Below, one piece after another: positions 1,803-63,962 of a DNA stretch of 64,000 nucleotides; the stretch's first letter is position 1, and the number at the start of each line of letters is the position of its first letter. The notes beneath the pieces were generated by a model. It did no database searches, had not been told where the DNA came from, and saw only the letters and a list, made by a program, of their open reading frames with translations. The position numbers were made by a program, and so were the translations under genes. Origin of the DNA: Epithemia pelagica (taxonomy: Eukaryota > Protista > Bacillariophyta); NCBI GenBank assembly GCA_946965045.2, contig OX337234.1, forward strand, positions 806,001-870,000, read 5' to 3'.

Positions 1803-3206
1803 CTAGGAACGAATCGATCCACCTCGTCTTGCATAAATGGTAAAGTAACCCTCTGGAATACCATTCTGTTGCTGCTTTGATGATCTCTTGTGGTTATCCA
1901 CTCGCTTTGGAGCTTCTTCGTCGTAGAAGACAACCCGCCTGGGACTCCCGCTGGTCAACGACCCCAAGAAAGGCTCTTCTTCAAATCGGACGAGCTCGCA
2001 TGGACTAAAACAAACAGTTTCCTCAATGCCATAGAGATGTCGAATTCCCATTGATTTCAAAGTAGTGAGACTTACAACAAAGAATGGCTTGTGTTCCCAA
2101 GAGTTTTGGATGAGAAACTCTAAATCTCCATTCACGAGACGAGCGCCCACGACAAGAACGGCATGGTTGGGGTTGAGAAACTGTGCGGACTGTTCCTCAT
2201 GCCACGGCGCGCGAAATAGCAAATCGTCACTGTCGATAAGCTCTTGTGTGACCTTCAATCCCTCAATCATGTATGCACCGTTTGTCTGCAGTGTCTCTGA
2301 GAAAATGTCAAAGAGCGTACGAGCTCTGAGACAGGAAATTGGAATTTTGTGGTTGACTTCTATCTCGGGATTCTGTTCCTGCAGGAGTCTTTTGGCATGA
2401 GGCTCTAAATGGCCACCGTCGCCGCGAAAGATATTGGAAAAGATCTCTTTGGGGGAGAATCTGTTCCGCATGTACCGACACACATTGATGTGTTTGTACT
2501 TTGGCTCTTTCTCCACAACATCATCCGAGGAGCTAGTTCTTTTCTTTACTCGTTGAAGTTCGCCCAAGTAGTAAATGGCGTTCGCCACCACGACAGCGTA
2601 GCAGATCGTTGAGTCTTGTCGCTGGTATCGGAGAAAGGGTTTGACACCTTCATCAAAAAGGGTTACCTTGGTTTCGGATTTTTCGGTACCCCATTCTGGA
2701 TGGCGTTGAAGAAAGTCTGCAAATTTCGAATGACCAGAATCACCAGAGTCTTCTTCGTCGCCTTTCTTCCGGACAAAGGCATCAAGTCTCTTTCCAAATG
2801 CAGACTCGGGATCCATTACAGCGTCGATGAGATTTTGGAATATACAGTTTGGGTCTTTTTGAACTAGTTCAGGCTGCTTCTTGAGCAGGAGGAACGCTGC
2901 CTTGACCTTTTGGATTCCGGTGAGTGTGCTCCATTCATGGCGACTAGCAAGAGAATTCCATTCGACAGCTATAGCGTGAATAGGACGGTCCGATAACTTT
3001 GCTTGGGGAGGTGTACATTTGTTCTGCTGAAAGAGGTCGTGGACCGTCTTTAGTCGAGTCTTTGGAGACTGAATACTTCCCGTCGTCTCTTCTTCCTCGT
3101 CAGCCTCGGTGGACGCCGTTACACTTTGAAGATCGGGAATATCCTCAAACTTGCTCCAGTCCATACTCTCAACAGTCTCGTGATTGTTGATGGCTTCTTG
3201 ACTCAT
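1803..3206 (-). CDS. Papain-fold (clan CA, C1-like) cysteine protease, 467 aa, type A, unit 1
   Basis: Single-exon ORF. Motifs: Q..STICYA (oxyanion Gln plus catalytic Cys), GDGG, NHAVLVVG (catalytic His) and IQNSW (catalytic Asn), in papain order and spacing. Acidic N-terminus with no hydrophobic signal peptide. Confidence 0.88.
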   Translation of the reverse strand: MSQEAINNHETVESMDWSKFEDIPDLQSVTASTEADEEEETTGSIQSPKTRLKTVHDLFQQNKCTPPQAKLSDRPIHAIAVEWNSLASRHEWSTLTGIQKVKAAFLLLKKQPELVQKDPNCIFQNLIDAVMDPESAFGKRLDAFVRKKGDEEDSGDSGHSKFADFLQRHPEWGTEKSETKVTLFDEGVKPFLRYQRQDSTICYAVVVANAIYYLGELQRVKKRTSSSDDVVEKEPKYKHINVCRYMRNRFSPKEIFSNIFRGDGGHLEPHAKRLLQEQNPEIEVNHKIPISCLRARTLFDIFSETLQTNGAYMIEGLKVTQELIDSDDLLFRAPWHEEQSAQFLNPNHAVLVVGARLVNGDLEFLIQNSWEHKPFFVVSLTTLKSMGIRHLYGIEETVCFSPCELVRFEEEPFLGSLTSGSPRRVVFYDEEAPKRVDNHKRSSKQQQNGIPEGYFTIYARRGGSIRS

Positions 3207-4195: not shown

Positions 4196-6742
4196 ATAGT
4201 GCAGTAGCTGTAACCGAGAAAGACAGCACAGGTGTCGTTGATCTCCAAAGTTTTTTTCCCAATGAGCGTCTGTAGCCGACGGAAGTTTGAGTGTGGTGAT
4301 GGCTTATCGACTTGTGCACCCCAAAATACCGTCTTGAAATTCCGGTAATGTTGAGCAGAAAGATGTCAAGCCTGCGACAACACCCACAGTCAACAAGCGA
4401 TTTGACAGGCGTCAAAACACATGAGACAACCGCATCTCCAATGTCGTATAAGACATCCGGGCAAAATAATGCGTCTGGTCATGATCGCCTGTGTTTTGAC
4501 CCTCAAAGCCAACCCGAAATGCCCAGGTATCAAAAGCACTCGGTATCTTTAAATCATGGTTGAAAGCCTTTTTTCTCTTGAACTTCCTGTGGCCTTGTCG
4601 CTCGGGTAGGTGCCAGCTACAGTTAGGACGACAACAGCATGCGGAGAGCTGCAAATGTCCAATACGGTTAGCGTGGAGGCCTCAGAACCATTCTGTGCAC
4701 ACAAAATAGATGGCCTCCCGTTTCAAAATAGTGAAAACCGTCACCTAGAACGATTCTAATATCACAATTCGAAAATCAGCAACACAACCGATTGGAATAC
4801 CGCCTTCGTAGACTTGGCCAAACGCGTAGGGGAGCAAACAAGAGGAGCAAAGCTGCCAAACATTTTGTGGACCCTGATCGTTGCCCTCATCGCTGGATAG
4901 ATGCTTTGAGCAGATCGTGCATCTTTATTTCGGCACTCTGCTGCTTCTGTCGTTGTCGCTTGCATATTCCATGACTGAATGGGCTTGATGCATGCTCTCA
5001 CTCTTTCAGGTGCAACGACCAAAAGGTCTTTGCTGTTCAACGTCAGTCCGTCGTCTCGGCTTTAGTAATCCAACTGTAACTGTGGGCAATGAGATATTCT
5101 TGATTGGAGCAAGGACAATGATCAACAGCAAACGTCGGTCACGCAGTGATCATAACGATAGCCCAGGTGCGTTGAAGAAAGATAGTCGGTTTGGAAAGTA
5201 TTACAAAATGAAGTCTGTTGGTCTATACCTGAAGGAGCCCTTCGCAATGTCATGACTCGAGACAGTGTAGACCTTGATTGGGAGAAGAACTATGAAGACC
5301 ACATATCGAAGCCCGCATGTGATTCCATGGATGGTCCTGCCTAAAAGATAACGAATGATTCTCAAAGTTAATCTGTAGGTTTACCGGACGGTGCCGCAAT
5401 TAACGCAATGACAAGGGAAGATGTTGACCCGAGGGCTCTGGAATTAGACTGGGACAAGAAATATGAAGCAAAACACTGGAAGAGGAAATCTGTTGGCTTA
5501 CCCGACGGATGTTGTGATATGAGAGAGCTTGGATTTAGAACGTCAATTCTAGGCGACAGCGTTGGAGAAAAAGACCAGTGTGCTACAATATTTGGTCAAG
5601 TTGGGATGAAAAACGATGAAGAGCTCCTCAAGTTCAGGAAAGATCTAGAGCATGCGAAAAAAACCCAAGTCTGTACTCATGGCAGCGATTTCATCGAAGG
5701 CTGAGACACAATAAGATGCTTCAAACAACGGAAAGCCGGATTGATGGCTGCAAAAGCATCTAAAGGGCAACCCAAAGATGTCAAGCCCTCCGATGGGGAA
5801 AATCCGGATTGATGGCAGCGATTGCTGCAAAAAGGTCCCAAAACGACAATGACTCTAACGACTAAGGAGGGAGATCTGGATTGATGGTGGCCATTGCCGT
5901 CTTGGTGCCGAAGAATGACACCGCAGATGCTAACAATGATGGAGCAGGATTGGTTGGCTGCAAATGCCGCCAGAGCGCCATATCATGAGAGCACCAAGAA
6001 TGACAAAGCGGGATTGATGGCCGCGATTTCCAACAAGGCACCGAAAAATACCAGTAACTCGAATGACAGAGGAGGAAGAGCTGCCTTAGTGGCCACCAAG
6101 GGGCCGAAGAATGAAATGTTCCAGTCTTAGTTAACCAACTACTTGGAGAAACTCGTGTTGTAACTCCATCGTTTTGTTCAAAGATAGAGCCACTTGCTAT
6201 TCACACTATTGTTAGAACTTGACGCAGTAGGCAGTTCCAGTCAAACTGTGATAGTGGACAGCTACTACCGGCAACAAGAATAGCAACAAGTCGGTCACCA
6301 TTCGGTCCAACTATAGTGACCTGGGTATGCGTGATTTGCCGATGCTCATGGCGGACACTCAATCGGCACGTCGTCCACTACGGGGTTGGGCGTCACATTC
6401 ACCAAGGAAGCAGGGTCAGGAGAAGCCTGGATTGAAGCCGGACCCCCGAATCGAGGTGCCAGTTCTTCGAGATCGACCCTTCCTTGGCCAAGCTAGGATT
6501 CAATCAAGCTACCTAGGTAGTATCCATGCCCAGATAGGGGGGATTGAGGTCTTTTGATTCCTTCATTACAATCGATTTCAGTGTTTTGAGTACATAGGCC
6601 AATTTTATTACCGAAATAGTGGGAACTTGATCTAACGACCCGGATACGTCGAACCAATTTATCATTTTGCGTTCCAACGGCCACTACATGTAGAGAACTG
6701 CAATCTGCATTCTTGCCCTCAGTAGAGAAGCTGCTGCTACTA

Positions 6743-8146
6743 CTAGGAACGAATCGATCCACCTCGTCTTGCATAAATGGTAAAGTAACCCTCTGGAATA
6801 CCATTCTGTTGCTGCTTTGATGATCTCTTGTGGTTATCCACTCGCTTTGGAGCTTCTTCGTCGTAGAAGACAACCCGCCTGGGACTCCCGCTGGTCAACG
6901 ACCCCAAGAAAGGCTCTTCTTCAAATCGGACGAGCTCGCATGGACTAAAACAAACAGTTTCCTCAATGCCATAGAGATGTCGAATTCCCATTGATTTCAA
7001 AGTAGTGAGACTTACAACAAAGAATGGCTTGTGTTCCCAGGAGTTTTGGATGAGAAACTCTAAATCTCCATTCACGAGACGAACGCCCACGACAAGAACG
7101 GCATGGTTGGGGTTGAGAAACTGTGCGGACTGTTCCTCATGCCACGGCGCGCGAAATAGCAAATCGTCACTGTCGATAAGCTCTTGTGTGACCTTCAATC
7201 CCTCAATCATGTATGCACCGTTTGTCTGCAGTGTCTCTGAGAAAAGGTCAAAGAGCGTATGAGCTTTGCCAAGGAAAATTGGAAACTCATGGACGACCTT
7301 TTTGTCGGGATTCTGTTCCTGCAGGAGTCTTTTGGCATGAGGCTCTAAATGGCCACCGTCGCCGCGAAAGATATTGGAAAAGATCTCTTTGGGGGAGAAT
7401 CTGTTCCGCATGTACCGACACACATTGATGTGTTTGTACTTTGGCTCTTTCTCCACAACATCATCCGAGGAGCTAGTTCTTTTCTTTACTCGTTGAAGTT
7501 CGCCCAAGTAGTAAATGGCGTTCGCCACCACGACAGCGTAGCAGATCGTTGAGTCTTGTCGCTGGTATCGGAGAAAGGGTTTGACACCTTCATCAAAAAG
7601 GGTTACCTTGGTTTCGGATTTTTCGGTACCCCATTCTGGATGGCGTTGAAGAAAGTCTGCAAATTTCGAATGACCAGAATCACCAGAGTCTTCTTCGTCG
7701 CCTTTCTTCCGGACAAAGGCATCAAGTCTCTTTCCAAATGCAGACTCGGGATCCATTACAGCGTCGATGAGATTTTGGAATATACAGTTTGGGTCTTTTT
7801 GAACTAGTTCAGGCTGCTTCTTGAGCAGGAGGAACGCTGCCTTGACCTTTTGGATTCCGGTGAGTGTGCTCCATTCATGGCGACTAGCAAGAGAATTCCA
7901 TTCGACAGCTATAGCGTGAATAGGACGGTCCGATAACTTTGCTTGGGGAGGTGTACATTTGTTCTGCTGAAAGAGGTCGTGGACCGTCTTTAGTCGAGTC
8001 TTTGGAGACTGAATACTTCCCGTCGTCTCTTCTTCCTCGTCAGCCTCGGTGGACGCCGTTACACTTTGAAGATCGGGAATATCCTCAAACTTGCTCCAGT
8101 CCATACTCTCAACAGTCTCGTGATTGTTGATGGCTTCTTGACTCAT
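6743..8146 (-). CDS. Papain-fold cysteine protease, 467 aa, type B, unit 2
   Basis: Intact ORF with the same catalytic motifs; carries the PDKKVVHEFPIFLGKAHTLFDL patch. Confidence 0.88.
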   Translation of the reverse strand: MSQEAINNHETVESMDWSKFEDIPDLQSVTASTEADEEEETTGSIQSPKTRLKTVHDLFQQNKCTPPQAKLSDRPIHAIAVEWNSLASRHEWSTLTGIQKVKAAFLLLKKQPELVQKDPNCIFQNLIDAVMDPESAFGKRLDAFVRKKGDEEDSGDSGHSKFADFLQRHPEWGTEKSETKVTLFDEGVKPFLRYQRQDSTICYAVVVANAIYYLGELQRVKKRTSSSDDVVEKEPKYKHINVCRYMRNRFSPKEIFSNIFRGDGGHLEPHAKRLLQEQNPDKKVVHEFPIFLGKAHTLFDLFSETLQTNGAYMIEGLKVTQELIDSDDLLFRAPWHEEQSAQFLNPNHAVLVVGVRLVNGDLEFLIQNSWEHKPFFVVSLTTLKSMGIRHLYGIEETVCFSPCELVRFEEEPFLGSLTSGSPRRVVFYDEEAPKRVDNHKRSSKQQQNGIPEGYFTIYARRGGSIRS

Positions 8147-11682: not shown

Positions 11683-13086
11683 CTAGGAACGAATCGATCC
11701 ACCTCGTCTTGCATAAATGGTAAAGTAACCCTCTGGAATACCATTCTGTTGCTGCTTTGATGATCTCTTGTGGTTATCCACTCGCTTTGGAGCTTCTTCG
11801 TCGTAGAAGACAACCCGCCTGGGACTCCCGCTGGTCAACGACCCCAAGAAAGGCTCTTCTTCAAATCGGACGAGCTCGCATGGACTAAAACAAACAGTTT
11901 CCTCAATGCCATAGAGATGTCGAATTCCCATTGATTTCAAAGTAGTGAGACTTACAACAAAGAATGGCTTGTGTTCCCAGGAGTTTTGGATGAGAAACTC
12001 TAAATCTCCATTCACGAGACGAACGCCCACGACAAGAACGGCATGGTTGGGGTTGAGAAACTGTGCGGACTGTTCCTCATGCCACGGCGCGCGAAATAGC
12101 AAATCGTCACTGTCGATAAGCTCTTGTGTGACCTTCAATCCCTCAATCATGTATGCACCGTTTGTCTGCAGTGTCTCTGAGAAAAGGTCAAAGAGCGTAT
12201 GAGCTTTGCCAAGGAAAATTGGAAACTCATGGACGACCTTTTTGTCGGGATTCTGTTCCTGCAGGAGTCTTTTGGCATGAGGCTCTAAATGGCCACCGTC
12301 GCCGCGAAAGATATTGGAAAAGATCTCTTTGGGGGAGAATCTGTTCCGCATGTACCGACACACATTGATGTGTTTGTACTTTGGCTCTTTCTCCACAACA
12401 TCATCCGAGGAGCTAGTTCTTTTCTTTACTCGTTGAAGTTCGCCCAAGTAGTAAATGGCGTTCGCCACCACGACAGCGTAGCAGATCGTTGAGTCTTGTC
12501 GCTGGTATCGGAGAAAGGGTTTGACACCTTCATCAAAAAGGGTTACCTTGGTTTCGGATTTTTCGGTACCCCATTCTGGATGGCGTTGAAGAAAGTCTGC
12601 AAATTTCGAATGACCAGAATCACCAGAGTCTTCTTCGTCGCCTTTCTTCCGGACAAAGGCATCAAGTCTCTTTCCAAATGCAGACTCGGGATCCATTACA
12701 GCGTCGATGAGATTTTGGAATATACAGTTTGGGTCTTTTTGAACTAGTTCAGGCTGCTTCTTGAGCAGGAGGAACGCTGCCTTGACCTTTTGGATTCCGG
12801 TGAGTGTGCTCCATTCATGGCGACTAGCAAGAGAATTCCATTCGACAGCTATAGCGTGAATAGGACGGTCCGATAACTTTGCTTGGGGAGGTGTACATTT
12901 GTTCTGCTGAAAGAGGTCGTGGACCGTCTTTAGTCGAGTCTTTGGAGACTGAATACTTCCCGTCGTCTCTTCTTCCTCGTCAGCCTCGGTGGACGCCGTT
13001 ACACTTTGAAGATCGGGAATATCCTCAAACTTGCTCCAGTCCATACTCTCAACAGTCTCGTGATTGTTGATGGCTTCTTGACTCAT
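11683..13086 (-). CDS. Papain-fold cysteine protease, 467 aa, type B, unit 3
   Basis: Intact ORF with the same protein as unit 2; TIR element 150 bp upstream of the ATG. Confidence 0.88.
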   Translation of the reverse strand: MSQEAINNHETVESMDWSKFEDIPDLQSVTASTEADEEEETTGSIQSPKTRLKTVHDLFQQNKCTPPQAKLSDRPIHAIAVEWNSLASRHEWSTLTGIQKVKAAFLLLKKQPELVQKDPNCIFQNLIDAVMDPESAFGKRLDAFVRKKGDEEDSGDSGHSKFADFLQRHPEWGTEKSETKVTLFDEGVKPFLRYQRQDSTICYAVVVANAIYYLGELQRVKKRTSSSDDVVEKEPKYKHINVCRYMRNRFSPKEIFSNIFRGDGGHLEPHAKRLLQEQNPDKKVVHEFPIFLGKAHTLFDLFSETLQTNGAYMIEGLKVTQELIDSDDLLFRAPWHEEQSAQFLNPNHAVLVVGVRLVNGDLEFLIQNSWEHKPFFVVSLTTLKSMGIRHLYGIEETVCFSPCELVRFEEEPFLGSLTSGSPRRVVFYDEEAPKRVDNHKRSSKQQQNGIPEGYFTIYARRGGSIRS

Positions 13087-13235
13087 TGTGTAATACTTTC
13101 GGTCCTGATCAATATATGAAAAGCAAGAACTCAGACCGTGGACAAAGTTCTACCTTAGTTGTCTTCTTGTGATTTTGGGACTGTGAGAGGCGTTTCGCAG
13201 TTTCGTTTTCGATCGTGGAGGAACACATTGCGCTG

Positions 13236-13712
13236 CTATGGGTCCCAACGCAGTAGAGCCTACGTAATTTTTCCTAGTACATGACGTCACGTTTGGCATC
13301 AAGTTTGTCGCGGTGTATCGTGGCTTCACCATGGCATGCCTTCCGTCAATCTGTTATGGTCCATAACTATCTTCGTTTTCTTATCCCTCGCAAAGATCCG
13401 TTCTATTCGTTCTATTTGTTTGATTGCTACGAGGGATAAGAAAAACTCCTTGTCCTTGTGCCACAAAGCCTGATCGTAAAAGGTCCCCTCGTCGTTGCTC
13501 TCAGAAGCGCAAGGAGCGCGCAACAACACCAATCGAGCGAACCGAGTCCCTAGCGCTAGTGACTAACCTAGATCTACCGTTGTAATAGAAATGGAGAGAT
13601 GAAAATCGTACAGAAAAATCCGCCATGGTCAAATTAGTCTGATGGTAACGTTCATTTGCACCAGTGCAATGGTTGAAATTCCACGTGTAAAGCACGGCGT
13701 TGGGACCCATAG
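13236..13712. mobile_element. Non-autonomous TIR DNA transposon (MITE-like, 477 bp), possibly PIF/Harbinger superfamily
   Basis: Perfect 15-bp TIRs CTATGGGTCCCAACG (13236-13250) and CGTTGGGACCCATAG (13698-13712). CTG is duplicated at 13233-13235 and 13713-13715. The empty site CGCTGCGGGA is present in all other units. Confidence 0.95.
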
Positions 13713-17102: not shown

Positions 17103-18497
17103 CTAGGAACGAATCGATCCACCTCGTCTTGCATAAATGGTAAAGTAACCCTCTGGAATACCATTCTGTTGCTGCTTTGATGATCTCTTGTGGTTATCCA
17201 CTCGCTTTGGAGCTTCTTCGTCGTAGAAGACAACCCGCCTGGGACTCCCGCTGGTCAACGACCCCAAGAAAGGCTCTTCTTCAAATCGGACGAGCTCGCA
17301 TGGACTAAAACAAACAGTTTCCTCAATGCCATAGAGATGTCGAATTCCCATTGATTTCAAAGTAGTGAGACTTACAACAAAGAATGGCTTGTGTTCCCAG
17401 GAGTTTTGGATGAGAAACTCTAAATCTCCATTCACGAGACGAACGCCCACGACAAGAACGGCATGGTTGGGGTTGAGAAACTGTGCGGACTGTTCCTCAT
17501 GCCACGGCGCGCGAAATAGCAAATCGTCACTGTCGATAAGCTCTTGTGTGACCTTCAATCCCTCAATCATGTATGCACCGTTTGTCTGCAGTGTCTCTGA
17601 GAAAAGGTCAAAGAGCGTATGAGCTTTGCCAAGGAAAATTGGAAACTCATGGACGACCTTTTTGTCGGGATTCTGTTCCTGCAGGAGTCTTTTGGCATGA
17701 GGCTCTAAATGGCCACCGTCGCCGCGAAAGATATTGGAAAAGATCTCTTTGGGGGAGAATCTGTTCCGCATGTACCGACACACATTGATGTGTTTGTACT
17801 TTGGCTCTTTCTCCACAACATCATCCGAGGAGCTAGTTCTTTTCTTTACTCGTTGAAGTTCGCCCAAGTAGTAAATGGCGTTCGCCACCACGACAGCGTA
17901 GCAGATCGTTGAGTCTTGTCGCTGGTATCGGAGAAAGGGTTTGACACCTTCATCAAAAAGGGTTACCTTGGTTTCGGATTTTTCGGTACCCCATTCTGGA
18001 TGGCGTTGAAGAAAGTCTGCAAATTTCGAATGACCAGAATCACCAGAGTCTTCTTCGTCGCCTTTCTTCCGGACAAAGGCATCAAGTCTCTTTCCAAATG
18101 CAGACTCGGGATCCATTACAGCGTCGATGAGATTTTGGAATATACAGTTTGGGTCTTTTTGAACTAGTTCAGGCTGCTTCTTGAGCAGGAGGAACGCTGC
18201 CTTGACCTTTTGGATTCCGGTGAGTGTGCTCCATTCATGGCGACTAGCAAGAGAATTCCATTCGACAGCTATTGCGTGAATAGGACGGTCCGATAACTTT
18301 GCTTGGGGAGGTGTACATTTGTTCTGCTGAAAGAGGTCGTGGACCGTCTTTAGTCGAGTCTTTGGAGACTGAATACTTCCCGTCGTCTCTTCTTCCTCGG
18401 TGGACGCCGTTACACTTTGAAGATCGGGAATATCCTCAAACTTGCTCCAGTCCATACTCTCAACAGTCTCGTGATTGTTGATGGCTTCTTGACTCAT
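17103..18497 (-). CDS. Papain-fold cysteine protease, 464 aa, type B with 9-bp in-frame deletion, unit 4
   Basis: Intact ORF; TEADEEEE becomes TEEEE. Confidence 0.88.
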   Translation of the reverse strand: MSQEAINNHETVESMDWSKFEDIPDLQSVTASTEEEETTGSIQSPKTRLKTVHDLFQQNKCTPPQAKLSDRPIHAIAVEWNSLASRHEWSTLTGIQKVKAAFLLLKKQPELVQKDPNCIFQNLIDAVMDPESAFGKRLDAFVRKKGDEEDSGDSGHSKFADFLQRHPEWGTEKSETKVTLFDEGVKPFLRYQRQDSTICYAVVVANAIYYLGELQRVKKRTSSSDDVVEKEPKYKHINVCRYMRNRFSPKEIFSNIFRGDGGHLEPHAKRLLQEQNPDKKVVHEFPIFLGKAHTLFDLFSETLQTNGAYMIEGLKVTQELIDSDDLLFRAPWHEEQSAQFLNPNHAVLVVGVRLVNGDLEFLIQNSWEHKPFFVVSLTTLKSMGIRHLYGIEETVCFSPCELVRFEEEPFLGSLTSGSPRRVVFYDEEAPKRVDNHKRSSKQQQNGIPEGYFTIYARRGGSIRS

Positions 18498-22033: not shown

Positions 22034-23437
22034 CTAGGAACGAATCGATCCACCTCGTCTTGCATAAATGGTAAAGTAACCCTCTGGAATACCATTCTGT
22101 TGCTGCTTTGATGATCTCTTGTGGTTATCCACTCGCTTTGGAGCTTCTTCGTCGTAGAAGACAACCCGCCTGGGACTCCCGCTGGTCAACGACCCCAAGA
22201 AAGGCTCTTCTTCAAATCGGACGAGCTCGCATGGACTAAAACAAACAGTTTCCTCAATGCCATAGAGATGTCGAATTCCCATTGATTTCAAAGTAGTGAG
22301 ACTTACAACAAAGAATGGCTTGTGTTCCCAGGAGTTTTGGATGAGAAACTCTAAATCTCCATTCACGAGACGAACGCCCACGACAAGAACGGCATGGTTG
22401 GGGTTGAGAAACTGTGCGGACTGTTCCTCATGCCACGGCGCGCGAAATAGCAAATCGTCACTGTCGATAAGCTCTTGTGTGACCTTCAATCCCTCAATCA
22501 TGTATGCACCGTTTGTCTGCAGTGTCTCTGAGAAAAGGTCAAAGAGCGTATGAGCTTTGCCAAGGAAAATTGGAAACTCATGGACGACCTTTTTGTCGGG
22601 ATTCTGTTCCTGCAGGAGTCTTTTGGCATGAGGCTCTAAATGGCCACCGTCGCCGCGAAAGATATTGGAAAAGATCTCTTTGGGGGAGAATCTGTTCCGC
22701 ATGTACCGACACACATTGATGTGTTTGTACTTTGGCTCTTTCTCCACAACATCATCCGAGGAGCTAGTTCTTTTCTTTACTCGTTGAAGTTCGCCCAAGT
22801 AGTAAATGGCGTTCGCCACCACGACAGCGTAGCAGATCGTTGAGTCTTGTCGCTGGTATCGGAGAAAGGGTTTGACACCTTCATCAAAAAGGGTTACCTT
22901 GGTTTCGGATTTTTCGGTACCCCATTCTGGATGGCGTTGAAGAAAGTCTGCAAATTTCGAATGACCAGAATCACCAGAGTCTTCTTCGTCGCCTTTCTTC
23001 CGGACAAAGGCATCAAGTCTCTTTCCAAATGCAGACTCGGGATCCATTACAGCGTCGATGAGATTTTGGAATATACAGTTTGGGTCTTTTTGAACTAGTT
23101 CAGGCTGCTTCTTGAGCAGGAGGAACGCTGCCTTGACCTTTTGGATTCCGGTGAGTGTGCTCCATTCATGGCGACTAGCAAGAGAATTCCATTCGACAGC
23201 TATAGCGTGAATAGGACGGTCCGATAACTTTGCTTGGGGAGGTGTACATTTGTTCTGCTGAAAGAGGTCGTGGACCGTCTTTAGTCGAGTCTTTGGAGAC
23301 TGAATACTTCCCGTCGTCTCTTCTTCCTCGTCAGCCTCGGTGGACGCCGTTACACTTTGAAGATCGGGAATATCCTCAAACTTGCTCCAGTCCATACTCT
23401 CAACAGTCTCGTGATTGTTGATGGCTTCTTGACTCAT
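22034..23437 (-). CDS. Papain-fold cysteine protease, 467 aa, type B, unit 5
   Basis: Intact ORF with catalytic motifs. Confidence 0.88.
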   Translation of the reverse strand: MSQEAINNHETVESMDWSKFEDIPDLQSVTASTEADEEEETTGSIQSPKTRLKTVHDLFQQNKCTPPQAKLSDRPIHAIAVEWNSLASRHEWSTLTGIQKVKAAFLLLKKQPELVQKDPNCIFQNLIDAVMDPESAFGKRLDAFVRKKGDEEDSGDSGHSKFADFLQRHPEWGTEKSETKVTLFDEGVKPFLRYQRQDSTICYAVVVANAIYYLGELQRVKKRTSSSDDVVEKEPKYKHINVCRYMRNRFSPKEIFSNIFRGDGGHLEPHAKRLLQEQNPDKKVVHEFPIFLGKAHTLFDLFSETLQTNGAYMIEGLKVTQELIDSDDLLFRAPWHEEQSAQFLNPNHAVLVVGVRLVNGDLEFLIQNSWEHKPFFVVSLTTLKSMGIRHLYGIEETVCFSPCELVRFEEEPFLGSLTSGSPRRVVFYDEEAPKRVDNHKRSSKQQQNGIPEGYFTIYARRGGSIRS

Positions 23438-26973: not shown

Positions 26974-28368
26974 CTAGGAACGAATCGATCCACCTCGTCT
27001 TGCATAAATGGTAAAGTAACCCTCTGGAATACCATTCTGTTGCTGCTTTGATGATCTCTTGTGGTTATCCACTCGCTTTGGAGCTTCTTCGTCGTAGAAG
27101 ACAACCCGCCTGGGACTCCCGCTGGTCAACGACCCCAAGAAAGGCTCTTCTTCAAATCGGACGAGCTCGCATGGACTAAAACAAACAGTTTCCTCAATGC
27201 CATAGAGATGTCGAATTCCCATTGATTTCAAAGTAGTGAGACTTACAACAAAGAATGGCTTGTGTTCCCAGGAGTTTTGGATGAGAAACTCTAAATCTCC
27301 ATTCACGAGACGAACGCCCACGACAAGAACGGCATGGTTGGGGTTGAGAAACTGTGCGGACTGTTCCTCATGCCACGGCGCGCGAAATAGCAAATCGTCA
27401 CTGTCGATAAGCTCTTGTGTGACCTTCAATCCCTCAATCATGTATGCACCGTTTGTCTGCAGTGTCTCTGAGAAAAGGTCAAAGAGCGTATGAGCTTTGC
27501 CAAGGAAAATTGGAAACTCATGGACGACCTTTTTGTCGGGATTCTGTTCCTGCAGGAGTCTTTTGGCATGAGGCTCTAAATGGCCACCGTCGCCGCGAAA
27601 GATATTGGAAAAGATCTCTTTGGGGGAGAATCTGTTCCGCATGTACCGACACACATTGATGTGTTTGTACTTTGGCTCTTTCTCCACAACATCATCCGAG
27701 GAGCTAGTTCTTTTCTTTACTCGTTGAAGTTCGCCCAAGTAGTAAATGGCGTTCGCCACCACGACAGCGTAGCAGATCGTTGAGTCTTGTCGCTGGTATC
27801 GGAGAAAGGGTTTGACACCTTCATCAAAAAGGGTTACCTTGGTTTCGGATTTTTCGGTACCCCATTCTGGATGGCGTTGAAGAAAGTCTGCAAATTTCGA
27901 ATGACCAGAATCACCAGAGTCTTCTTCGTCGCCTTTCTTCCGGACAAAGGCATCAAGTCTCTTTCCAAATGCAGACTCGGGATCCATTACAGCGTCGATG
28001 AGATTTTGGAATATACAGTTTGGGTCTTTTTGAACTAGTTCAGGCTGCTTCTTGAGCAGGAGGAACGCTGCCTTGACCTTTTGGATTCCGGTGAGTGTGC
28101 TCCATTCATGGCGACTAGCAAGAGAATTCCATTCGACAGCTATTGCGTGAATAGGACGGTCCGATAACTTTGCTTGGGGAGGTGTACATTTGTTCTGCTG
28201 AAAGAGGTCGTGGACCGTCTTTAGTCGAGTCTTTGGAGACTGAATACTTCCCGTCGTCTCTTCTTCCTCGGTGGACGCCGTTACACTTTGAAGATCGGGA
28301 ATATCCTCAAACTTGCTCCAGTCCATACTCTCAACAGTCTCGTGATTGTTGATGGCTTCTTGACTCAT
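26974..28368 (-). CDS. Papain-fold cysteine protease, 464 aa, type B with 9-bp in-frame deletion, unit 6
   Basis: Intact ORF with the same deletion as unit 4. Confidence 0.88.
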   Translation of the reverse strand: MSQEAINNHETVESMDWSKFEDIPDLQSVTASTEEEETTGSIQSPKTRLKTVHDLFQQNKCTPPQAKLSDRPIHAIAVEWNSLASRHEWSTLTGIQKVKAAFLLLKKQPELVQKDPNCIFQNLIDAVMDPESAFGKRLDAFVRKKGDEEDSGDSGHSKFADFLQRHPEWGTEKSETKVTLFDEGVKPFLRYQRQDSTICYAVVVANAIYYLGELQRVKKRTSSSDDVVEKEPKYKHINVCRYMRNRFSPKEIFSNIFRGDGGHLEPHAKRLLQEQNPDKKVVHEFPIFLGKAHTLFDLFSETLQTNGAYMIEGLKVTQELIDSDDLLFRAPWHEEQSAQFLNPNHAVLVVGVRLVNGDLEFLIQNSWEHKPFFVVSLTTLKSMGIRHLYGIEETVCFSPCELVRFEEEPFLGSLTSGSPRRVVFYDEEAPKRVDNHKRSSKQQQNGIPEGYFTIYARRGGSIRS

Positions 28369-31904: not shown

Positions 31905-33308
31905 CTAGGAACGAATCGATCCACCTCGTCTTGCATAAATGGTAAAGTAACCCTCTGGAATACCATTCTGTTGCTGCTTTGATGATCTCTTGTGGTTATC
32001 CACTCGCTTTGGAGCTTCTTCGTCGTAGAAGACAACCCGCCTGGGACTCCCGCTGGTCAACGACCCCAAGAAAGGCTCTTCTTCAAATCGGACGAGCTCG
32101 CATGGACTAAAACAAACAGTTTCCTCAATGCCATAGAGATGTCGAATTCCCATTGATTTCAAAGTAGTGAGACTTACAACAAAGAATGGCTTGTGTTCCC
32201 AGGAGTTTTGGATGAGAAACTCTAAATCTCCATTCACGAGACGAACGCCCACGACAAGAACGGCATGGTTGGGGTTGAGAAACTGTGCGGACTGTTCCTC
32301 ATGCCACGGCGCGCGAAATAGCAAATCGTCACTGTCGATAAGCTCTTGTGTGACCTTCAATCCCTCAATCATGTATGCACCGTTTGTCTGCAGTGTCTCT
32401 GAGAAAAGGTCAAAGAGCGTATGAGCTTTGCCAAGGAAAATTGGAAACTCATGGACGACCTTTTTGTCGGGATTCTGTTCCTGCAGGAGTCTTTTGGCAT
32501 GAGGCTCTAAATGGCCACCGTCGCCGCGAAAGATATTGGAAAAGATCTCTTTGGGGGAGAATCTGTTCCGCATGTACCGACACACATTGATGTGTTTGTA
32601 CTTTGGCTCTTTCTCCACAACATCATCCGAGGAGCTAGTTCTTTTCTTTACTCGTTGAAGTTCGCCCAAGTAGTAAATGGCGTTCGCCACCACGACAGCG
32701 TAGCAGATCGTTGAGTCTTGTCGCTGGTATCGGAGAAAGGGTTTGACACCTTCATCAAAAAGGGTTACCTTGGTTTCGGATTTTTCGGTACCCCATTCTG
32801 GATGGCGTTGAAGAAAGTCTGCAAATTTCGAATGACCAGAATCACCAGAGTCTTCTTCGTCGCCTTTCTTCCGGACAAAGGCATCAAGTCTCTTTCCAAA
32901 TGCAGACTCGGGATCCATTACAGCGTCGATGAGATTTTGGAATATACAGTTTGGGTCTTTTTGAACTAGTTCAGGCTGCTTCTTGAGCAGGAGGAACGCT
33001 GCCTTGACCTTTTGGATTCCGGTGAGTGTGCTCCATTCATGGCGACTAGCAAGAGAATTCCATTCGACAGCTATAGCGTGAATAGGACGGTCCGATAACT
33101 TTGCTTGGGGAGGTGTACATTTGTTCTGCTGAAAGAGGTCGTGGACCGTCTTTAGTCGAGTCTTTGGAGACTGAATACTTCCCGTCGTCTCTTCTTCCTC
33201 GTCAGCCTCGGTGGACGCCGTTACACTTTGAAGATCGGGAATATCCTCAAACTTGCTCCAGTCCATACTCTCAACAGTCTCGTGATTGTTGATGGCTTCT
33301 TGACTCAT
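31905..33308 (-). CDS. Papain-fold cysteine protease, 467 aa, type B, unit 7
   Basis: Intact ORF with catalytic motifs. Confidence 0.88.
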   Translation of the reverse strand: MSQEAINNHETVESMDWSKFEDIPDLQSVTASTEADEEEETTGSIQSPKTRLKTVHDLFQQNKCTPPQAKLSDRPIHAIAVEWNSLASRHEWSTLTGIQKVKAAFLLLKKQPELVQKDPNCIFQNLIDAVMDPESAFGKRLDAFVRKKGDEEDSGDSGHSKFADFLQRHPEWGTEKSETKVTLFDEGVKPFLRYQRQDSTICYAVVVANAIYYLGELQRVKKRTSSSDDVVEKEPKYKHINVCRYMRNRFSPKEIFSNIFRGDGGHLEPHAKRLLQEQNPDKKVVHEFPIFLGKAHTLFDLFSETLQTNGAYMIEGLKVTQELIDSDDLLFRAPWHEEQSAQFLNPNHAVLVVGVRLVNGDLEFLIQNSWEHKPFFVVSLTTLKSMGIRHLYGIEETVCFSPCELVRFEEEPFLGSLTSGSPRRVVFYDEEAPKRVDNHKRSSKQQQNGIPEGYFTIYARRGGSIRS

Positions 33309-36842: not shown

Positions 36843-38246
36843 CTAGGAACGAATCGATCCACCTCGTCTTGCATAAATGGTAAAGTAACCCTCTGGAATA
36901 CCATTCTGTTGCTGCTTTGATGATCTCTTGTGGTTATCCACTCGCTTTGGAGCTTCTTCGTCGTAGAAGACAACCCGCCTGGGACTCCCGCTGGTCAACG
37001 ACCCCAAGAAAGGCTCTTCTTCAAATCGGACGAGCTCGCATGGACTAAAACAAACAGTTTCCTCAATGCCATAGAGATGTCGAATTCCCATTGATTTCAA
37101 AGTAGTGAGACTTACAACAAAGAATGGCTTGTGTTCCCAGGAGTTTTGGATGAGAAACTCTAAATCTCCATTCACGAGACGAACGCCCACGACAAGAACG
37201 GCATGGTTGGGGTTGAGAAACTGTGCGGACTGTTCCTCATGCCACGGCGCGCGAAATAGCAAATCGTCACTGTCGATAAGCTCTTGTGTGACCTTCAATC
37301 CCTCAATCATGTATGCACCGTTTGTCTGCAGTGTCTCTGAGAAAAGGTCAAAGAGCGTATGAGCTTTGCCAAGGAAAATTGGAAACTCATGGACGACCTT
37401 TTTGTCGGGATTCTGTTCCTGCAGGAGTCTTTTGGCATGAGGCTCTAAATGGCCACCGTCGCCGCGAAAGATATTGGAAAAGATCTCTTTGGGGGAGAAT
37501 CTGTTCCGCATGTACCGACACACATTGATGTGTTTGTACTTTGGCTCTTTCTCCACAACATCATCCGAGGAGCTAGTTCTTTTCTTTACTCGTTGAAGTT
37601 CGCCCAAGTAGTAAATGGCGTTCGCCACCACGACAGCGTAGCAGATCGTTGAGTCTTGTCGCTGGTATCGGAGAAAGGGTTTGACACCTTCATCAAAAAG
37701 GGTTACCTTGGTTTCGGATTTTTCGGTACCCCATTCTGGATGGCGTTGAAGAAAGTCTGCAAATTTCGAATGACCAGAATCACCAGAGTCTTCTTCGTCG
37801 CCTTTCTTCCGGACAAAGGCATCAAGTCTCTTTCCAAATGCAGACTCGGGATCCATTACAGCGTCGATGAGATTTTGGAATATACAGTTTGGGTCTTTTT
37901 GAACTAGTTCAGGCTGCTTCTTGAGCAGGAGGAACGCTGCCTTGACCTTTTGGATTCCGGTGAGTGTGCTCCATTCATGGCGACTAGCAAGAGAATTCCA
38001 TTCGACAGCTATAGCGTGAATAGGACGGTCCGATAACTTTGCTTGGGGAGGTGTACATTTGTTCTGCTGAAAGAGGTCGTGGACCGTCTTTAGTCGAGTC
38101 TTTGGAGACTGAATACTTCCCGTCGTCTCTTCTTCCTCGTCAGCCTCGGTGGACGCCGTTACACTTTGAAGATCGGGAATATCCTCAAACTTGCTCCAGT
38201 CCATACTCTCAACAGTCTCGTGATTGTTGATGGCTTCTTGACTCAT
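36843..38246 (-). CDS. Papain-fold cysteine protease, 467 aa, type B, unit 8
   Basis: Intact ORF with catalytic motifs. Confidence 0.88.
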   Translation of the reverse strand: MSQEAINNHETVESMDWSKFEDIPDLQSVTASTEADEEEETTGSIQSPKTRLKTVHDLFQQNKCTPPQAKLSDRPIHAIAVEWNSLASRHEWSTLTGIQKVKAAFLLLKKQPELVQKDPNCIFQNLIDAVMDPESAFGKRLDAFVRKKGDEEDSGDSGHSKFADFLQRHPEWGTEKSETKVTLFDEGVKPFLRYQRQDSTICYAVVVANAIYYLGELQRVKKRTSSSDDVVEKEPKYKHINVCRYMRNRFSPKEIFSNIFRGDGGHLEPHAKRLLQEQNPDKKVVHEFPIFLGKAHTLFDLFSETLQTNGAYMIEGLKVTQELIDSDDLLFRAPWHEEQSAQFLNPNHAVLVVGVRLVNGDLEFLIQNSWEHKPFFVVSLTTLKSMGIRHLYGIEETVCFSPCELVRFEEEPFLGSLTSGSPRRVVFYDEEAPKRVDNHKRSSKQQQNGIPEGYFTIYARRGGSIRS

Positions 38247-41782: not shown

Positions 41783-43186
41783 CTAGGAACGAATCGATCC
41801 ACCTCGTCTTGCATAAATGGTAAAGTAACCCTCTGGAATACCATTCTGTTGCTGCTTTGATGATCTCTTGTGGTTATCCACTCGCTTTGGAGCTTCTTCG
41901 TCGTAGAAGACAACCCGCCTGGGACTCCCGCTGGTCAACGACCCCAAGAAAGGCTCTTCTTCAAATCGGACGAGCTCGCATGGACTAAAACAAACAGTTT
42001 CCTCAATGCCATAGAGATGTCGAATTCCCATTGATTTCAAAGTAGTGAGACTTACAACAAAGAATGGCTTGTGTTCCCAGGAGTTTTGGATGAGAAACTC
42101 TAAATCTCCATTCACGAGACGAACGCCCACGACAAGAACGGCATGGTTGGGGTTGAGAAACTGTGCGGACTGTTCCTCATGCCACGGCGCGCGAAATAGC
42201 AAATCGTCACTGTCGATAAGCTCTTGTGTGACCTTCAATCCCTCAATCATGTATGCACCGTTTGTCTGCAGTGTCTCTGAGAAAAGGTCAAAGAGCGTAT
42301 GAGCTTTGCCAAGGAAAATTGGAAACTCATGGACGACCTTTTTGTCGGGATTCTGTTCCTGCAGGAGTCTTTTGGCATGAGGCTCTAAATGGCCACCGTC
42401 GCCGCGAAAGATATTGGAAAAGATCTCTTTGGGGGAGAATCTGTTCCGCATGTACCGACACACATTGATGTGTTTGTACTTTGGCTCTTTCTCCACAACA
42501 TCATCCGAGGAGCTAGTTCTTTTCTTTACTCGTTGAAGTTCGCCCAAGTAGTAAATGGCGTTCGCCACCACGACAGCGTAGCAGATCGTTGAGTCTTGTC
42601 GCTGGTATCGGAGAAAGGGTTTGACACCTTCATCAAAAAGGGTTACCTTGGTTTCGGATTTTTCGGTACCCCATTCTGGATGGCGTTGAAGAAAGTCTGC
42701 AAATTTCGAATGACCAGAATCACCAGAGTCTTCTTCGTCGCCTTTCTTCCGGACAAAGGCATCAAGTCTCTTTCCAAATGCAGACTCGGGATCCATTACA
42801 GCGTCGATGAGATTTTGGAATATACAGTTTGGGTCTTTTTGAACTAGTTCAGGCTGCTTCTTGAGCAGGAGGAACGCTGCCTTGACCTTTTGGATTCCGG
42901 TGAGTGTGCTCCATTCATGGCGACTAGCAAGAGAATTCCATTCGACAGCTATAGCGTGAATAGGACGGTCCGATAACTTTGCTTGGGGAGGTGTACATTT
43001 GTTCTGCTGAAAGAGGTCGTGGACCGTCTTTAGTCGAGTCTTTGGAGACTGAATACTTCCCGTCGTCTCTTCTTCCTCGTCAGCCTCGGTGGACGCCGTT
43101 ACACTTTGAAGATCGGGAATATCCTCAAACTTGCTCCAGTCCATACTCTCAACAGTCTCGTGATTGTTGATGGCTTCTTGACTCAT
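41783..43186 (-). CDS. Papain-fold cysteine protease, 467 aa, type B, unit 9
   Basis: Intact ORF with catalytic motifs. Confidence 0.88.
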   Translation of the reverse strand: MSQEAINNHETVESMDWSKFEDIPDLQSVTASTEADEEEETTGSIQSPKTRLKTVHDLFQQNKCTPPQAKLSDRPIHAIAVEWNSLASRHEWSTLTGIQKVKAAFLLLKKQPELVQKDPNCIFQNLIDAVMDPESAFGKRLDAFVRKKGDEEDSGDSGHSKFADFLQRHPEWGTEKSETKVTLFDEGVKPFLRYQRQDSTICYAVVVANAIYYLGELQRVKKRTSSSDDVVEKEPKYKHINVCRYMRNRFSPKEIFSNIFRGDGGHLEPHAKRLLQEQNPDKKVVHEFPIFLGKAHTLFDLFSETLQTNGAYMIEGLKVTQELIDSDDLLFRAPWHEEQSAQFLNPNHAVLVVGVRLVNGDLEFLIQNSWEHKPFFVVSLTTLKSMGIRHLYGIEETVCFSPCELVRFEEEPFLGSLTSGSPRRVVFYDEEAPKRVDNHKRSSKQQQNGIPEGYFTIYARRGGSIRS

Positions 43187-46722: not shown

Positions 46723-48126
46723 CTAGGAACGAATCGATCCACCTCGTCTTGCATAAATGGTAAAGTAACCCTCTGGAATACCATTCTGTTGCTGCTTTGA
46801 TGATCTCTTGTGGTTATCCACTCGCTTTGGAGCTTCTTCGTCGTAGAAGACAACCCGCCTGGGACTCCCGCTGGTCAACGACCCCAAGAAAGGCTCTTCT
46901 TCAAATCGGACGAGCTCGCATGGACTAAAACAAACAGTTTCCTCAATGCCATAGAGATGTCGAATTCCCATTGATTTCAAAGTAGTGAGACTTACAACAA
47001 AGAATGGCTTGTGTTCCCAGGAGTTTTGGATGAGAAACTCTAAATCTCCATTCACGAGACGAACGCCCACGACAAGAACGGCATGGTTGGGGTTGAGAAA
47101 CTGTGCGGACTGTTCCTCATGCCACGGCGCGCGAAATAGCAAATCGTCACTGTCGATAAGCTCTTGTGTGACCTTCAATCCCTCAATCATGTATGCACCG
47201 TTTGTCTGCAGTGTCTCTGAGAAAAGGTCAAAGAGCGTATGAGCTTTGCCAAGGAAAATTGGAAACTCATGGACGACCTTTTTGTCGGGATTCTGTTCCT
47301 GCAGGAGTCTTTTGGCATGAGGCTCTAAATGGCCACCGTCGCCGCGAAAGATATTGGAAAAGATCTCTTTGGGGGAGAATCTGTTCCGCATGTACCGACA
47401 CACATTGATGTGTTTGTACTTTGGCTCTTTCTCCACAACATCATCCGAGGAGCTAGTTCTTTTCTTTACTCGTTGAAGTTCGCCCAAGTAGTAAATGGCG
47501 TTCGCCACCACGACAGCGTAGCAGATCGTTGAGTCTTGTCGCTGGTATCGGAGAAAGGGTTTGACACCTTCATCAAAAAGGGTTACCTTGGTTTCGGATT
47601 TTTCGGTACCCCATTCTGGATGGCGTTGAAGAAAGTCTGCAAATTTCGAATGACCAGAATCACCAGAGTCTTCTTCGTCGCCTTTCTTCCGGACAAAGGC
47701 ATCAAGTCTCTTTCCAAATGCAGACTCGGGATCCATTACAGCGTCGATGAGATTTTGGAATATACAGTTTGGGTCTTTTTGAACTAGTTCAGGCTGCTTC
47801 TTGAGCAGGAGGAACGCTGCCTTGACCTTTTGGATTCCGGTGAGTGTGCTCCATTCATGGCGACTAGCAAGAGAATTCCATTCGACAGCTATAGCGTGAA
47901 TAGGACGGTCCGATAACTTTGCTTGGGGAGGTGTACATTTGTTCTGCTGAAAGAGGTCGTGGACCGTCTTTAGTCGAGTCTTTGGAGACTGAATACTTCC
48001 CGTCGTCTCTTCTTCCTCGTCAGCCTCGGTGGACGCCGTTACACTTTGAAGATCGGGAATATCCTCAAACTTGCTCCAGTCCATACTCTCAACAGTCTCG
48101 TGATTGTTGATGGCTTCTTGACTCAT
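46723..48126 (-). CDS. Papain-fold cysteine protease, 467 aa, type B, unit 10
   Basis: Intact ORF with catalytic motifs. Confidence 0.88.
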   Translation of the reverse strand: MSQEAINNHETVESMDWSKFEDIPDLQSVTASTEADEEEETTGSIQSPKTRLKTVHDLFQQNKCTPPQAKLSDRPIHAIAVEWNSLASRHEWSTLTGIQKVKAAFLLLKKQPELVQKDPNCIFQNLIDAVMDPESAFGKRLDAFVRKKGDEEDSGDSGHSKFADFLQRHPEWGTEKSETKVTLFDEGVKPFLRYQRQDSTICYAVVVANAIYYLGELQRVKKRTSSSDDVVEKEPKYKHINVCRYMRNRFSPKEIFSNIFRGDGGHLEPHAKRLLQEQNPDKKVVHEFPIFLGKAHTLFDLFSETLQTNGAYMIEGLKVTQELIDSDDLLFRAPWHEEQSAQFLNPNHAVLVVGVRLVNGDLEFLIQNSWEHKPFFVVSLTTLKSMGIRHLYGIEETVCFSPCELVRFEEEPFLGSLTSGSPRRVVFYDEEAPKRVDNHKRSSKQQQNGIPEGYFTIYARRGGSIRS

Positions 48127-51662: not shown

Positions 51663-53064
51663 CTAGGAACGAATCGATCCACCTCGTCTTGCATAAATGG
51701 TAAAGTAACACTCTGGAATACCATTCTGTTGCTGCTTTGATGATCTCTTGTGGTTATCCACTCGCTTTGGAGCTTCTTCGTCGTAGAAGACAACCCGCCT
51801 GGGACTCCCGCTGGTCAACGACCCCAAGAAAGGCTCTTCTTCAAATCGGACGAGCTCGCATGGACTAAAACAAACAGTTTCCTCAATGCCATAGAGATGT
51901 CGAATTCCCATTGATTTCAAAGTAGTGAGACTTACAACAAAGAATGGCTTGTGTTCCCAAGAGTTTTGGATGAGAAACTCTAAATCTCCATTCACGAGAC
52001 GAGCGCCCACGACAAGAACGGCATGGTTGGGGTTGAGAAACTGCGGACTGTTCCTCATGCCACGGCGCGCGAAATAGCAAATCGTCACTGTCGATAAGCT
52101 CTTGTGTGACCTTCAATCCCTGAATCATGTATGCACCGTTTGTCTGCAGTGTCTCTGAGAAAATGTCAAAGAGCGTACGAGCTCTGAGACAGGAAATTGG
52201 AATTTTGTGGTTGACTTCTATCTCGGGATTCTGTTCCTGCAGGAGTCTTTTGGCATGAGGCTCTAAATGGCCACCGTCGCCGCGAAAGATATTGGAAAAG
52301 ATCTCTTTGGGGGAGAATCTGTTCCGCATGTACCGACACACATTGATGTGTTTGTACTTTGGCTCTTTCTCCACAACATCATCCGAGGAGCTAGTTCTTT
52401 TCTTTACTCGTTGAAGTTCGCCCAAGTAGTAAATGGCGTTCGCCACCACGACAGCGTAGCAGATCGTTGAGTCTTGTCGCTGGTATCGGAGAAAGGGTTT
52501 GACACCTTCATCAAAAAGGGTTACCTTGGTTTCGGATTTTTCGGTACCCCATTCTGGATGGCGTTGAAGAAAGTCTGCAAATTTCGAATGACCAGAATCA
52601 CCAGAGTCTTCTTCGTCGCCTTTCTTCCGGACAAAGGCATCAAGTCTCTTTCCAAATGCAGACTCGGGATCCATTACAGCGTCGATGAGATTTTGGAATA
52701 TACAGTTTGGGTCTTTTTGAACTAGTTCAGGCTGCTTCTTGAGCAGGAGGAACGCTGCCTTGACCTTTTGGATTCCGGTGAGTGTGCTCCATTCATGGCG
52801 ACTAGCAAGAGAATTCCATTCGACAGCTATAGCGTGAATAGGACGGTCCGATAACTTTGCTTGGGGAGGTGTACATTTGTTCTGCTGAAAGAGGTCGTGG
52901 ACCGTCTTTAGTCGAGTCTTTGGAGACTGAATACTTCCCGTCGTCTCTTCTTCCTCGTCAGCCTCGGTGGACGCCGTTACACTTTGAAGATCGGGAATAT
53001 CCTCAAACTTGCTCCAGTCCATACTCTCAACAGTCTCGTGATTGTTGATGGCTTCTTGACTCAT
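51663..53064 (-). pseudogene. Papain-fold protease, type A, frameshifted, unit 11
   Basis: A 2-bp deletion (CTGTGCGGAC to CTGCGGAC, ~52043) shifts the frame just before NHAVLVVG, removing the catalytic His and Asn. Extra private changes E>Q and G>C. Confidence 0.88.
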
Positions 53065-58002: not shown

Positions 58003-58337
58003 TGTGTAATACTTTCGGTCCTGATCAATATATGAAAAGCAAGAACTCAGACCGTGGACAAAGTTCTACCTTGGTTGTCTTCTTGTGATTTTGGGACTGT
58101 GAGAGGCGTTTCGCAGTTTCGTTTTCGATCGTGGAGGAACACATTGCGCTGCGGGATTAGACTCTCGGAATCGAACGACGTGCAGGCGCGTTTACGCTCC
58201 CCCTTTTGTTGTTGTGAGCCACACAAAACGGCGATCGATTTCCTAGTAAAGGTAGATCCATGGAACGCTAGGCGGACCTGACTGGAATTTTCAAAGCAAT
58301 AAAAGGTATACTGTAGCGGTCCATTCCTTTGCTGTTT

Positions 58338-59255: not shown

Positions 59256-59593
59256 GGTGTCACAGAGGTGTGGAGTGGCCTTTGTGTCTACTGTCTGTGT
59301 GCTGGTTTGGATGGAGGTGTGTGACGCAACAGAGAACGACAACAATAACTGAAATAGACTCGTGCGTGAGAGTCCTAGAAAGGAGCAATGGGAAATACTG
59401 CAAACAAAACACCCACAAGGTATTGGAGTTGCAGCAATGACAGGCTGAACGAATGAATGATGAATATGGCGGCGATGTTCGTCCAGGAAAGTGGTACCCC
59501 CAAGCATGGGGTGAGTCCAATCACGCGTGATTGAATGCACTTCGTGCATTCGTCTACTCGAAAGATATCCACAGCGGACGCTATTACTCACGG

Positions 59594-59771: not shown

Positions 59772-59772
59772 G

Positions 59773-59779
59773 TCTCCTC
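59773..59779 (-). promoter_or_regulatory. Putative polypurine tract (GAGGAGA)
   Basis: Purine run ~37 bp after the pol stop, directly before the putative LTR. Confidence 0.5.
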
Positions 59780-59815
59780 GGGGATTTTGCATTTCTTGAA
59801 TCAAAAGCCTCGACT

Positions 59816-63959: not shown

Positions 63960-63962
63960 CAG

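Follow-up and report, generated by a model that had tools for sequence, protein, structure and literature searches.

Results

Tandem array of a protease gene with two versions of a 59-bp patch

The stretch of Epithemia pelagica DNA analyzed here (contig OX337234.1 of assembly GCA_946965045.2, positions 806,001 to 870,000; 64,000 nucleotides, hereafter the window) contains a tandem array on the minus strand (positions 1–58002) that consists of 12 head-to-tail units (U1 to U12) with a period of ~4940 bp. Each unit (~4.94 kb) has one intron-less open reading frame (ORF) of 467 amino acids on the minus strand, which encodes a predicted papain-like protease. This study concerns a 59-bp patch within this gene that occurs in two strongly diverged versions, type A and type B. 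The alignment of the 12 coding sequence (CDS) copies and of the whole units assigned U1, U11, and U12 to type A and U2–U10 to type B. The CDS of U1 (1803–3206, minus strand; 467 amino acids) is the sole intact type-A copy within the window, and its patch is located at 2306–2364 on the minus strand (codons 281–301, CDS nt 843–901; EIEVNHKIPISCLRARTLFDI). The type-B copies are U2 (CDS 6743–8146, minus strand; patch 7246–7304, DKKVVHEFPIFLGKAHTLFDL) and eight more, U3–U10 (11683–48126, minus strand), whose patches are located at 12186–12244, 17606–17664, 22537–22595, 27477–27535, 32408–32466, 37346–37404, 42286–42344, and 47226–47284. The remaining two type-A copies are pseudogenes on the minus strand, U11 (51663–53064; patch 52164–52222) and U12, the final unit of the array (56601–58002; patch 57102–57160).

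Types A and B differ by 18 substitutions in 59 bp with no indels, causing 12 amino acid changes in 21 codons; both the CDS and the unit alignments reproduced these counts, which had been given in the original prediction. The substitution spectrum counted from the CDS alignment was mixed, with 10 transitions and 8 transversions. Two further A/B sites flank the patch (2100–2143, minus strand): 2100 is synonymous (TCT/TCC, CDS nt 1107), and 2143 changes Ala to Val at residue 355 (GCT/GTT, nt 1064). The earlier claim that the rest of the CDS differs between the types solely at these two sites was borne out and holds for the whole unit, because beyond the patch and the two sites, zero A/B differences were found in the 4.94-kb unit, including the 3.5-kb spacer. 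All 20 A/B differences are thus confined to 265 bp, and the probability that at least 18 of 20 differences fall in one 59-bp window by chance is ~2e-29 after correction.

We compared the degree of homogenization across the 12 units of the window and six complete units of a second assembly, one European Nucleotide Archive (ENA) assembly whose gene set was drawn from a protein collection. The units were near-identical over 4.94 kb including the spacer, with a handful of variable sites per unit besides the A/B sites. The copies had been described as identical outside the patch, which does not hold in two respects. In U11 and U12, one CA of a CACA is deleted (CDS nt 1022–1023; near 52042 and 56980, respectively), and this 2-bp deletion causes a frameshift ahead of the catalytic His348, leaving ORFs of 393 amino acids. 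In the second assembly, the same deletion is found in P0091, the first copy of its array. From the position of the frameshift before His348 and the presence of the same lesion in the second assembly, U11 and U12 are real pseudogenes, and of the three type-A copies in the window, only U1 has no frameshift. Additionally, the non-adjacent units U4 and U6 share a 9-bp in-frame deletion in the acidic N-terminal tail, at the equivalents of window positions 3100–3108. Judged from the sequence, this common deletion is a further marker of exchange or duplication from unit to unit.

In the second assembly, the array is found on two contigs. On ctg1319l, a Copia flank is followed by one frameshifted A copy, and B copies then continue until the contig ends. 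The order on ctg1302l is two intact A copies, the paralogue P0002 (470 amino acids, 73% identical), a gypsy-type element, and a PIF/Harbinger transposase, and a second paralogue, P0093 (69% identical), is located ~17 kb beyond. P0003 appears to be the allele of P0093 on a haplotig, inferred from common neighboring genes. In gene orientation, the full array is likely to be [Copia] A* A* B9 A A P0002 [gypsy], where A* denotes a frameshifted A copy and B9 denotes nine B copies.

Because the array is long and highly repetitive, and frameshifted A copies number two in the window versus one in the second assembly, an artefact of assembly or polishing in a collapsed or expanded repeat has to be considered. 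Against this, the second assembly also has, on two contigs, both types of the patch, the frameshift, and the same unit period. In independent public runs, the tandem joint and the B patch were detected, and the A states at the two flanking sites were found in one run and one environmental contig. At the head-to-tail joint, the sequence goes back 4940; this joint was present in contigs of three public runs, indicating that the array is not peculiar to this assembly. With these observations, we regard an artefact as highly improbable.

The array encodes members of an uncharacterized family with a predicted papain fold

To characterize the protein, we searched sequence and structure databases. 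No Pfam match was obtained for type A, type B, or any of 55 family members; neither Peptidase_C1 (PF00112) nor the I29 propeptide was reached, and some pro-form structures were among the Foldseek matches of the whole model. Sequence matches in the PDB were weak (phmmer E 0.06–0.1), with 13–16% identity to solved structures, while the family profile matched dipeptidyl peptidase I (E 0.005) over helix 295–309, strand 312–317, and the His/Asn region. A protein atlas gave no family name and weak Peptidase_C1-containing clusters (0.91–0.92). An exhaustive search yielded 87 family clusters, all of which were metagenome-derived and annotated as "hypothetical protein" where named. The literature search returned no description of this protease family or of such a patch in diatoms.

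Gln195, Cys202, His348, and Asn368-Ser-Trp occur in the canonical papain order, and the His/Asn region aligns with cathepsin NHAVL...KNSW. Among the family members, conservation reaches at least 90% at Q195, C202, and H348 and is complete at Q367, and the last motif has the consensus QNSW. The AlphaFold2 models of A and B had a mean predicted local distance difference test score (pLDDT) of 82 and a predicted template modeling score of 0.79. Foldseek matched the model to cathepsin S (E 3e-7). VIA-align gave Z 13–14 with cathepsins X, B, and Der f 1, the match to cathepsin X reaching Z 13.9 with 181 aligned residues spanning 177–400; over residues 175–401, ~180 residues were aligned with a root-mean-square deviation of 3.3 Å. 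On the basis of these models, the array encodes an uncharacterized papain-fold family with conserved predicted catalytic residues.

The fold over 175–401 and the Gln/Cys/His/Asn order are shared with the papain family (MEROPS clan CA, family C1; cathepsins X, B, S, K, C, and Der p 1). In apparent contrast to that family, residues 1–45 are acidic and disordered (pLDDT <50) without a hydrophobic signal-like stretch, and the catalytic domain is preceded by a helical domain of ~120 residues (55–170) with no recognizable I29 propeptide. A connector of only 16 residues joins the third helix to the fourth. The whole-gene ratio of non-synonymous to synonymous substitution rates (omega, dN/dS) between paralogues was ~0.7, indicating that the family is fast-evolving.

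The patch coincides with the most variable connector of the catalytic domain

The landmarks on which the patch had been positioned, GDGG (262–265) and NGAY (309–312), were correct. In the AlphaFold2 models, the patch consists of loop 279–284, strand 285–289, loop 290–294, and the start of helix 295–309, and it lies between the GDGG loop with helix 267–278 and the helix preceding the NGAY strand. Secondary structure of the models and the family alignment both place it outside the catalytic residues, as the original prediction had supposed. The A and B models have identical predicted secondary structure with a pLDDT of ~95 in the patch.

In an alignment of 51 distant members, residues 281–300 showed the highest entropy of the catalytic core, with indels present. 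At the nucleotide level, the patch was the most diverged 60-nt window, bar the indel-bearing 3′ tail, in all paralogue comparisons except that of B with P0002. Eleven of the 12 A/B amino acid changes fall on family-variable, mostly hydrophilic positions, and the 12th (Phe/Ile at 288) is conservative and affects a hydrophobic position that the family conserves. A and B are identical at 284, 290, 295, 298, and 299, which are likewise hydrophobic and conserved in the family. Since the changes respect the positions conserved for the fold, both versions look like products of functional genes and not like the outcome of a random mutation shower. The changed residues are probably surface-exposed.

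The surface loop 84–100 of cathepsin K is a protein–protein interaction site remote from the active site (PMC5663397). By analogy, this loop probably lies in the same helix-to-helix connector as the patch, and a recognition role of the connector is conceivable.

The patch is older than its surroundings, and type B is the family-like state

Over codons 281–301, the Nei-Gojobori method counted 15 non-synonymous and 3 synonymous steps (dN 0.39, dS 0.26), while the other 446 codons have one of each between A and B (dS 0.003). The original prediction had noted only one purely synonymous codon change in the patch; CAC/CAT is indeed the sole such codon, but the substitution pathways contain the three synonymous steps counted above. 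These correspond to 3 per 13.7 synonymous sites in the patch versus 1 per 290 elsewhere (Fisher p 3e-4; Poisson probability of at least 3 steps at the background rate, 2e-5). The dS of the patch is equal to the value of 0.21–0.25 that separates the array from P0002 or P0003 in the remainder of the gene. Because a dS of 0.26 against 0.003 is unattainable at the background rate, the patch is of older ancestry than its flanks, synonymous sites included. It is not accounted for by selection of point mutations that arose newly in a young array.

The paralogues P0002 and P0003 were used as outgroups to determine the polarity. Of the 13 differing codons, type B shares the P0002 state at 10. B also agrees with P0002 and P0003 at the two flanking sites, where the A states are derived. 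These results indicate that B is the family-like, ancestral state and that A is derived or imported.

Copies exchange segments, and the patch moves as a block

The two flanking sites had been described as linked to the patch type. They are linked in the window, but the second assembly and an environmental contig showed them shuffled. In the second assembly, the A states of nt 1064 and 1107 accompany the B patch in some units, and a single unit is mixed; P0001 combines the B patch with Ala355. Site 234 and the patch occur in all four combinations in the four-gamete test. A 572-bp contig from an environmental biofilm has both A flanking states together with the B patch, as well as an extra change of codon 292 from CTT to ATT, the codon that is TGT in type A. 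These recombinants show that the flanking sites are separable from the patch, and the copies demonstrably exchange segments. The patch itself was met only as an intact block.

P0002 and P0003 form a mosaic of their own, being ~97% identical over the first 420 nt and ~85% identical thereafter (L001:10001–11413 versus L002:10001–11410). As read from the sequence, this mosaic indicates gene conversion within the family independently of the array.

Search for the source of the patch

P0002 is the nearest relative of the B patch, with 7 differences in 59 nt. It was rejected as a recent donor of this patch on account of these 7 differences and of ~12% differences between the patch and the flanking sites, where A equals B. 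For the A patch, blastn-short searches of both versions against the window and four loci gave no donor, only chance matches of 9–15 nt, and no source for a local template switch was found in the same sequences beyond these matches. When the window and five loci (L001–L005) were searched with the protein by tblastn, no further family fragment was found. The cluster proteins of the same assembly provided no A donor either, with only four patch types among them, namely A, B, P0002-type, and P0003/P0093-type. In contigs of the Joint Genome Institute (JGI) metagenomes, neither a flank-anchored DNA pattern nor a protein scan detected patch variants.

That all the changes of the patch fall in 59 bp, with no indel and no donor found, would be expected if they had arisen in place by one clustered mutation event, such as error-prone repair synthesis or template switching, and had then been spread by unit copying. 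However, the changes respect codon and fold constraints, introduce no stop codon, and affect a buried-type position only once, with a conservative replacement. The spectrum is mixed, the only nearby direct or inverted templates are the chance matches above, and both versions resemble ordinary family sequence in the segment. We consider clustered mutation in place very unlikely.

Retrotransposon reverse transcriptases flank the array, which raises targeted hypermutation of the diversity-generating retroelement type through a neighboring reverse transcriptase. These reverse transcriptases, however, belong to ordinary long terminal repeat (LTR) elements. No template repeat was found anywhere in the unit, the differences involve all four bases and are not confined to adenine, and only two discrete versions exist. 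Lacking both a template repeat and adenine specificity, this mechanism is effectively refuted.

Selection and the number of versions

The original prediction had proposed strong diversifying selection on the patch, but the analysis did not support it: omega of the patch, ~1.5 from the steps counted above, is not distinguishable from 1 (p 0.74). Contrasts of non-synonymous to synonymous steps between the patch and the rest of the gene among paralogues gave p values of 0.03–0.8, marginal at best, and these contrasts are not independent. We surveyed two assemblies, four read sets, and a collection of 15 billion proteins for variants of the patch. With this thin sampling, two versions were found plus one single-base variant, the codon 292 change, in one low-depth contig. 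No equivalent hotspot was observed in two other species, in which close paralogues in the P0012 and P0015 clusters are identical in the segment.

A protease that changes its specificity by swapping a short module had also been proposed. Only two versions and a single-base variant were found, and the frameshift has made pseudogenes of two of the three A copies in the window; a change of specificity through swapped modules is unproven.

Maintenance of a functional dimorphism is a reading close to the original prediction. According to it, two old surface versions with an exosite-like role are kept by balancing or diversifying selection while concerted evolution erases the remaining differences, and the array would encode proteases with two partner or substrate preferences. 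Both versions are present in both assemblies or haplotypes, and the divergence of the patch is at the level of paralogues, with sharp edges and a small linked shoulder. In the paralogue comparisons other than that of B with P0002, dN of the patch was 3–6 times that of the rest of the gene, and omega was at least 1.0 versus ~0.7 elsewhere. The changes fall at family-variable, mostly hydrophilic positions and keep the net charge, and the interaction site of cathepsin K (PMC5663397) would lie in the same connector if the analogy is correct. On the other hand, the patch omega not exceeding 1 significantly, the small number of versions, the frameshifted A copies, and the invariance of the segment in close paralogues of the two other species argue against such a dimorphism, and the whole-gene omega fits weak constraint generally. 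We therefore judge a maintained dimorphism possible but unlikely. More specifically, the array would hold a papain-fold family, apparently without a signal peptide, with two ancient exosite-like versions of the connector, and selection would keep the 59-bp block so that two recognition specificities result; we think it quite unlikely that this full scenario applies.

Borders of the array and other features of the locus

In the window, the array is followed by a non-repeated flank with long ORFs (58003–64000, no strand assigned), and the equivalent flank of the second assembly has a weak match to RVT_2 (Copia-type). At the opposite end, the homogenized zone terminates ~480 bp upstream of P0002 (L001:4458–4940 of the unit starting at 5054), and the last ~480 bp of spacer before P0002 has ~30 substitutions seen in no other unit.

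P0002 and P0093 are separated by a PIF/Harbinger-type transposase (DDE_Tnp_4) and a gypsy-type LTR element (L005:6099–7763 and L001:16614–20504), and the PIF insertion is seemingly missing from the other haplotig (L002). Comparison of P0003 with P0093 (L002:10001–11410 versus L005:10001–11410) revealed that P0003 has Tyr203Asn beside the catalytic Cys and Asn368Asp in the QNSW motif. Going by these substitutions, one of the two alleles may be losing activity.

Two features were observed in the spacers. The spacer of U4 only has a 480-bp insertion (13232–13711) bounded by perfect 15-bp terminal inverted repeats, with GCTGC to either side of it. This insertion looks like a young miniature inverted-repeat transposable element that landed in a single unit; no second copy was found in the window or the fetched loci. 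At the same place in every unit (~5400–6130 in the window, plus strand), there are degenerate ~68-bp repeats with GLMAAI...K..PK-like motifs in shifting frames, which adjoin ORFs of 87 and 98 amino acids with a duplicated "LDW(D/E)KxYE" segment. This region may be a decayed or intron-containing second gene of each unit.

Discussion

The patch is probably a short mosaic block of older ancestry, of the gene-conversion type, in an array that evolves concertedly, with B being family-like, A being derived, and the block coinciding with the most variable surface connector of the protein. Gene conversion is the mechanism that we infer, and a functional effect of the patch is not proven. In such a course of events, the A version would have been brought in from a diverged relative by a short conversion tract or retained from an old copy amid homogenized surroundings, and the block would since then have passed among units only as a whole. 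Because the block coincides with the connector that varies most in the papain-like catalytic domain, any exchange between diverged relatives would leave the densest differences exactly there. The original prediction of segmental gene conversion from a diverged donor thus stands as far as the older ancestry of the patch, the exchange between copies, and the P0002/P0003 mosaic are concerned, while the donor itself was not found in the sequences searched.

Several observations weigh against a mosaic block. No A donor was found in the window, the five fetched loci, the cluster members of the same assembly, or the JGI metagenomes, and P0002, still 7 of 59 nt away from the B patch, is no recent donor either. 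Two differences occur in the 206 bp beside the patch versus none in ~4.7 kb. This shoulder suggests either that the two types have existed side by side for a while or that homogenization is impeded locally by the diverged patch, and it fits long coexistence better than a single very recent import. Type-A copies flank the B block at either end, in the order A* A* B9 A within the window and A A P0002 within L001, and this order requires extra steps if B is ancestral. Finally, the type-A patch was not among the read variants listed, and its support comes from two assemblies that possibly share raw data.

Concerted evolution with mosaics of short gene conversions ("microconversions") is known from major histocompatibility complex, CYP21, globin, and opsin clusters. 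Microconversion mosaics have also been described in RXLR effector paralogues of Phytophthora ramorum (PMC3820680). The array resembles such systems in its near-identical units and spacers, a discrete short block of much older ancestry, exchange detected by the four-gamete test, a diverged copy (P0002) at the array edge, and mosaic paralogues. It differs from them in having no identified donor, a block that is very short (59 bp) and very diverged (30%), two forms only, and type A on both sides of the B core.

A second comparison concerns the exosites (ectosteric sites) of cathepsins K and V, in which a surface connector remote from catalysis mediates recognition of proteins or matrix substrates (PMC5663397, PMC10707025). 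The patch would lie in the same helix-to-helix connector, an equivalence that is topological only; in contrast to the cathepsins, the connector is much shorter here.

If the patch is a mosaic block, the array would be a clean, small case of concerted evolution and short conversion tracts shaping tandem gene families in a diatom. Such a case would serve annotation and estimates of conversion tract length, and it would not be surprising. The case would gain in importance should selection turn out to maintain both versions, since a connector distant from the active site would then be implicated in recognition, in a protease family that is unnamed in databases. Regardless of the patch, this family, with its predicted papain fold, conserved predicted catalytic residues, no Pfam match, and ~87 clusters so far known only as metagenome-derived hypothetical proteins, deserves a database entry.

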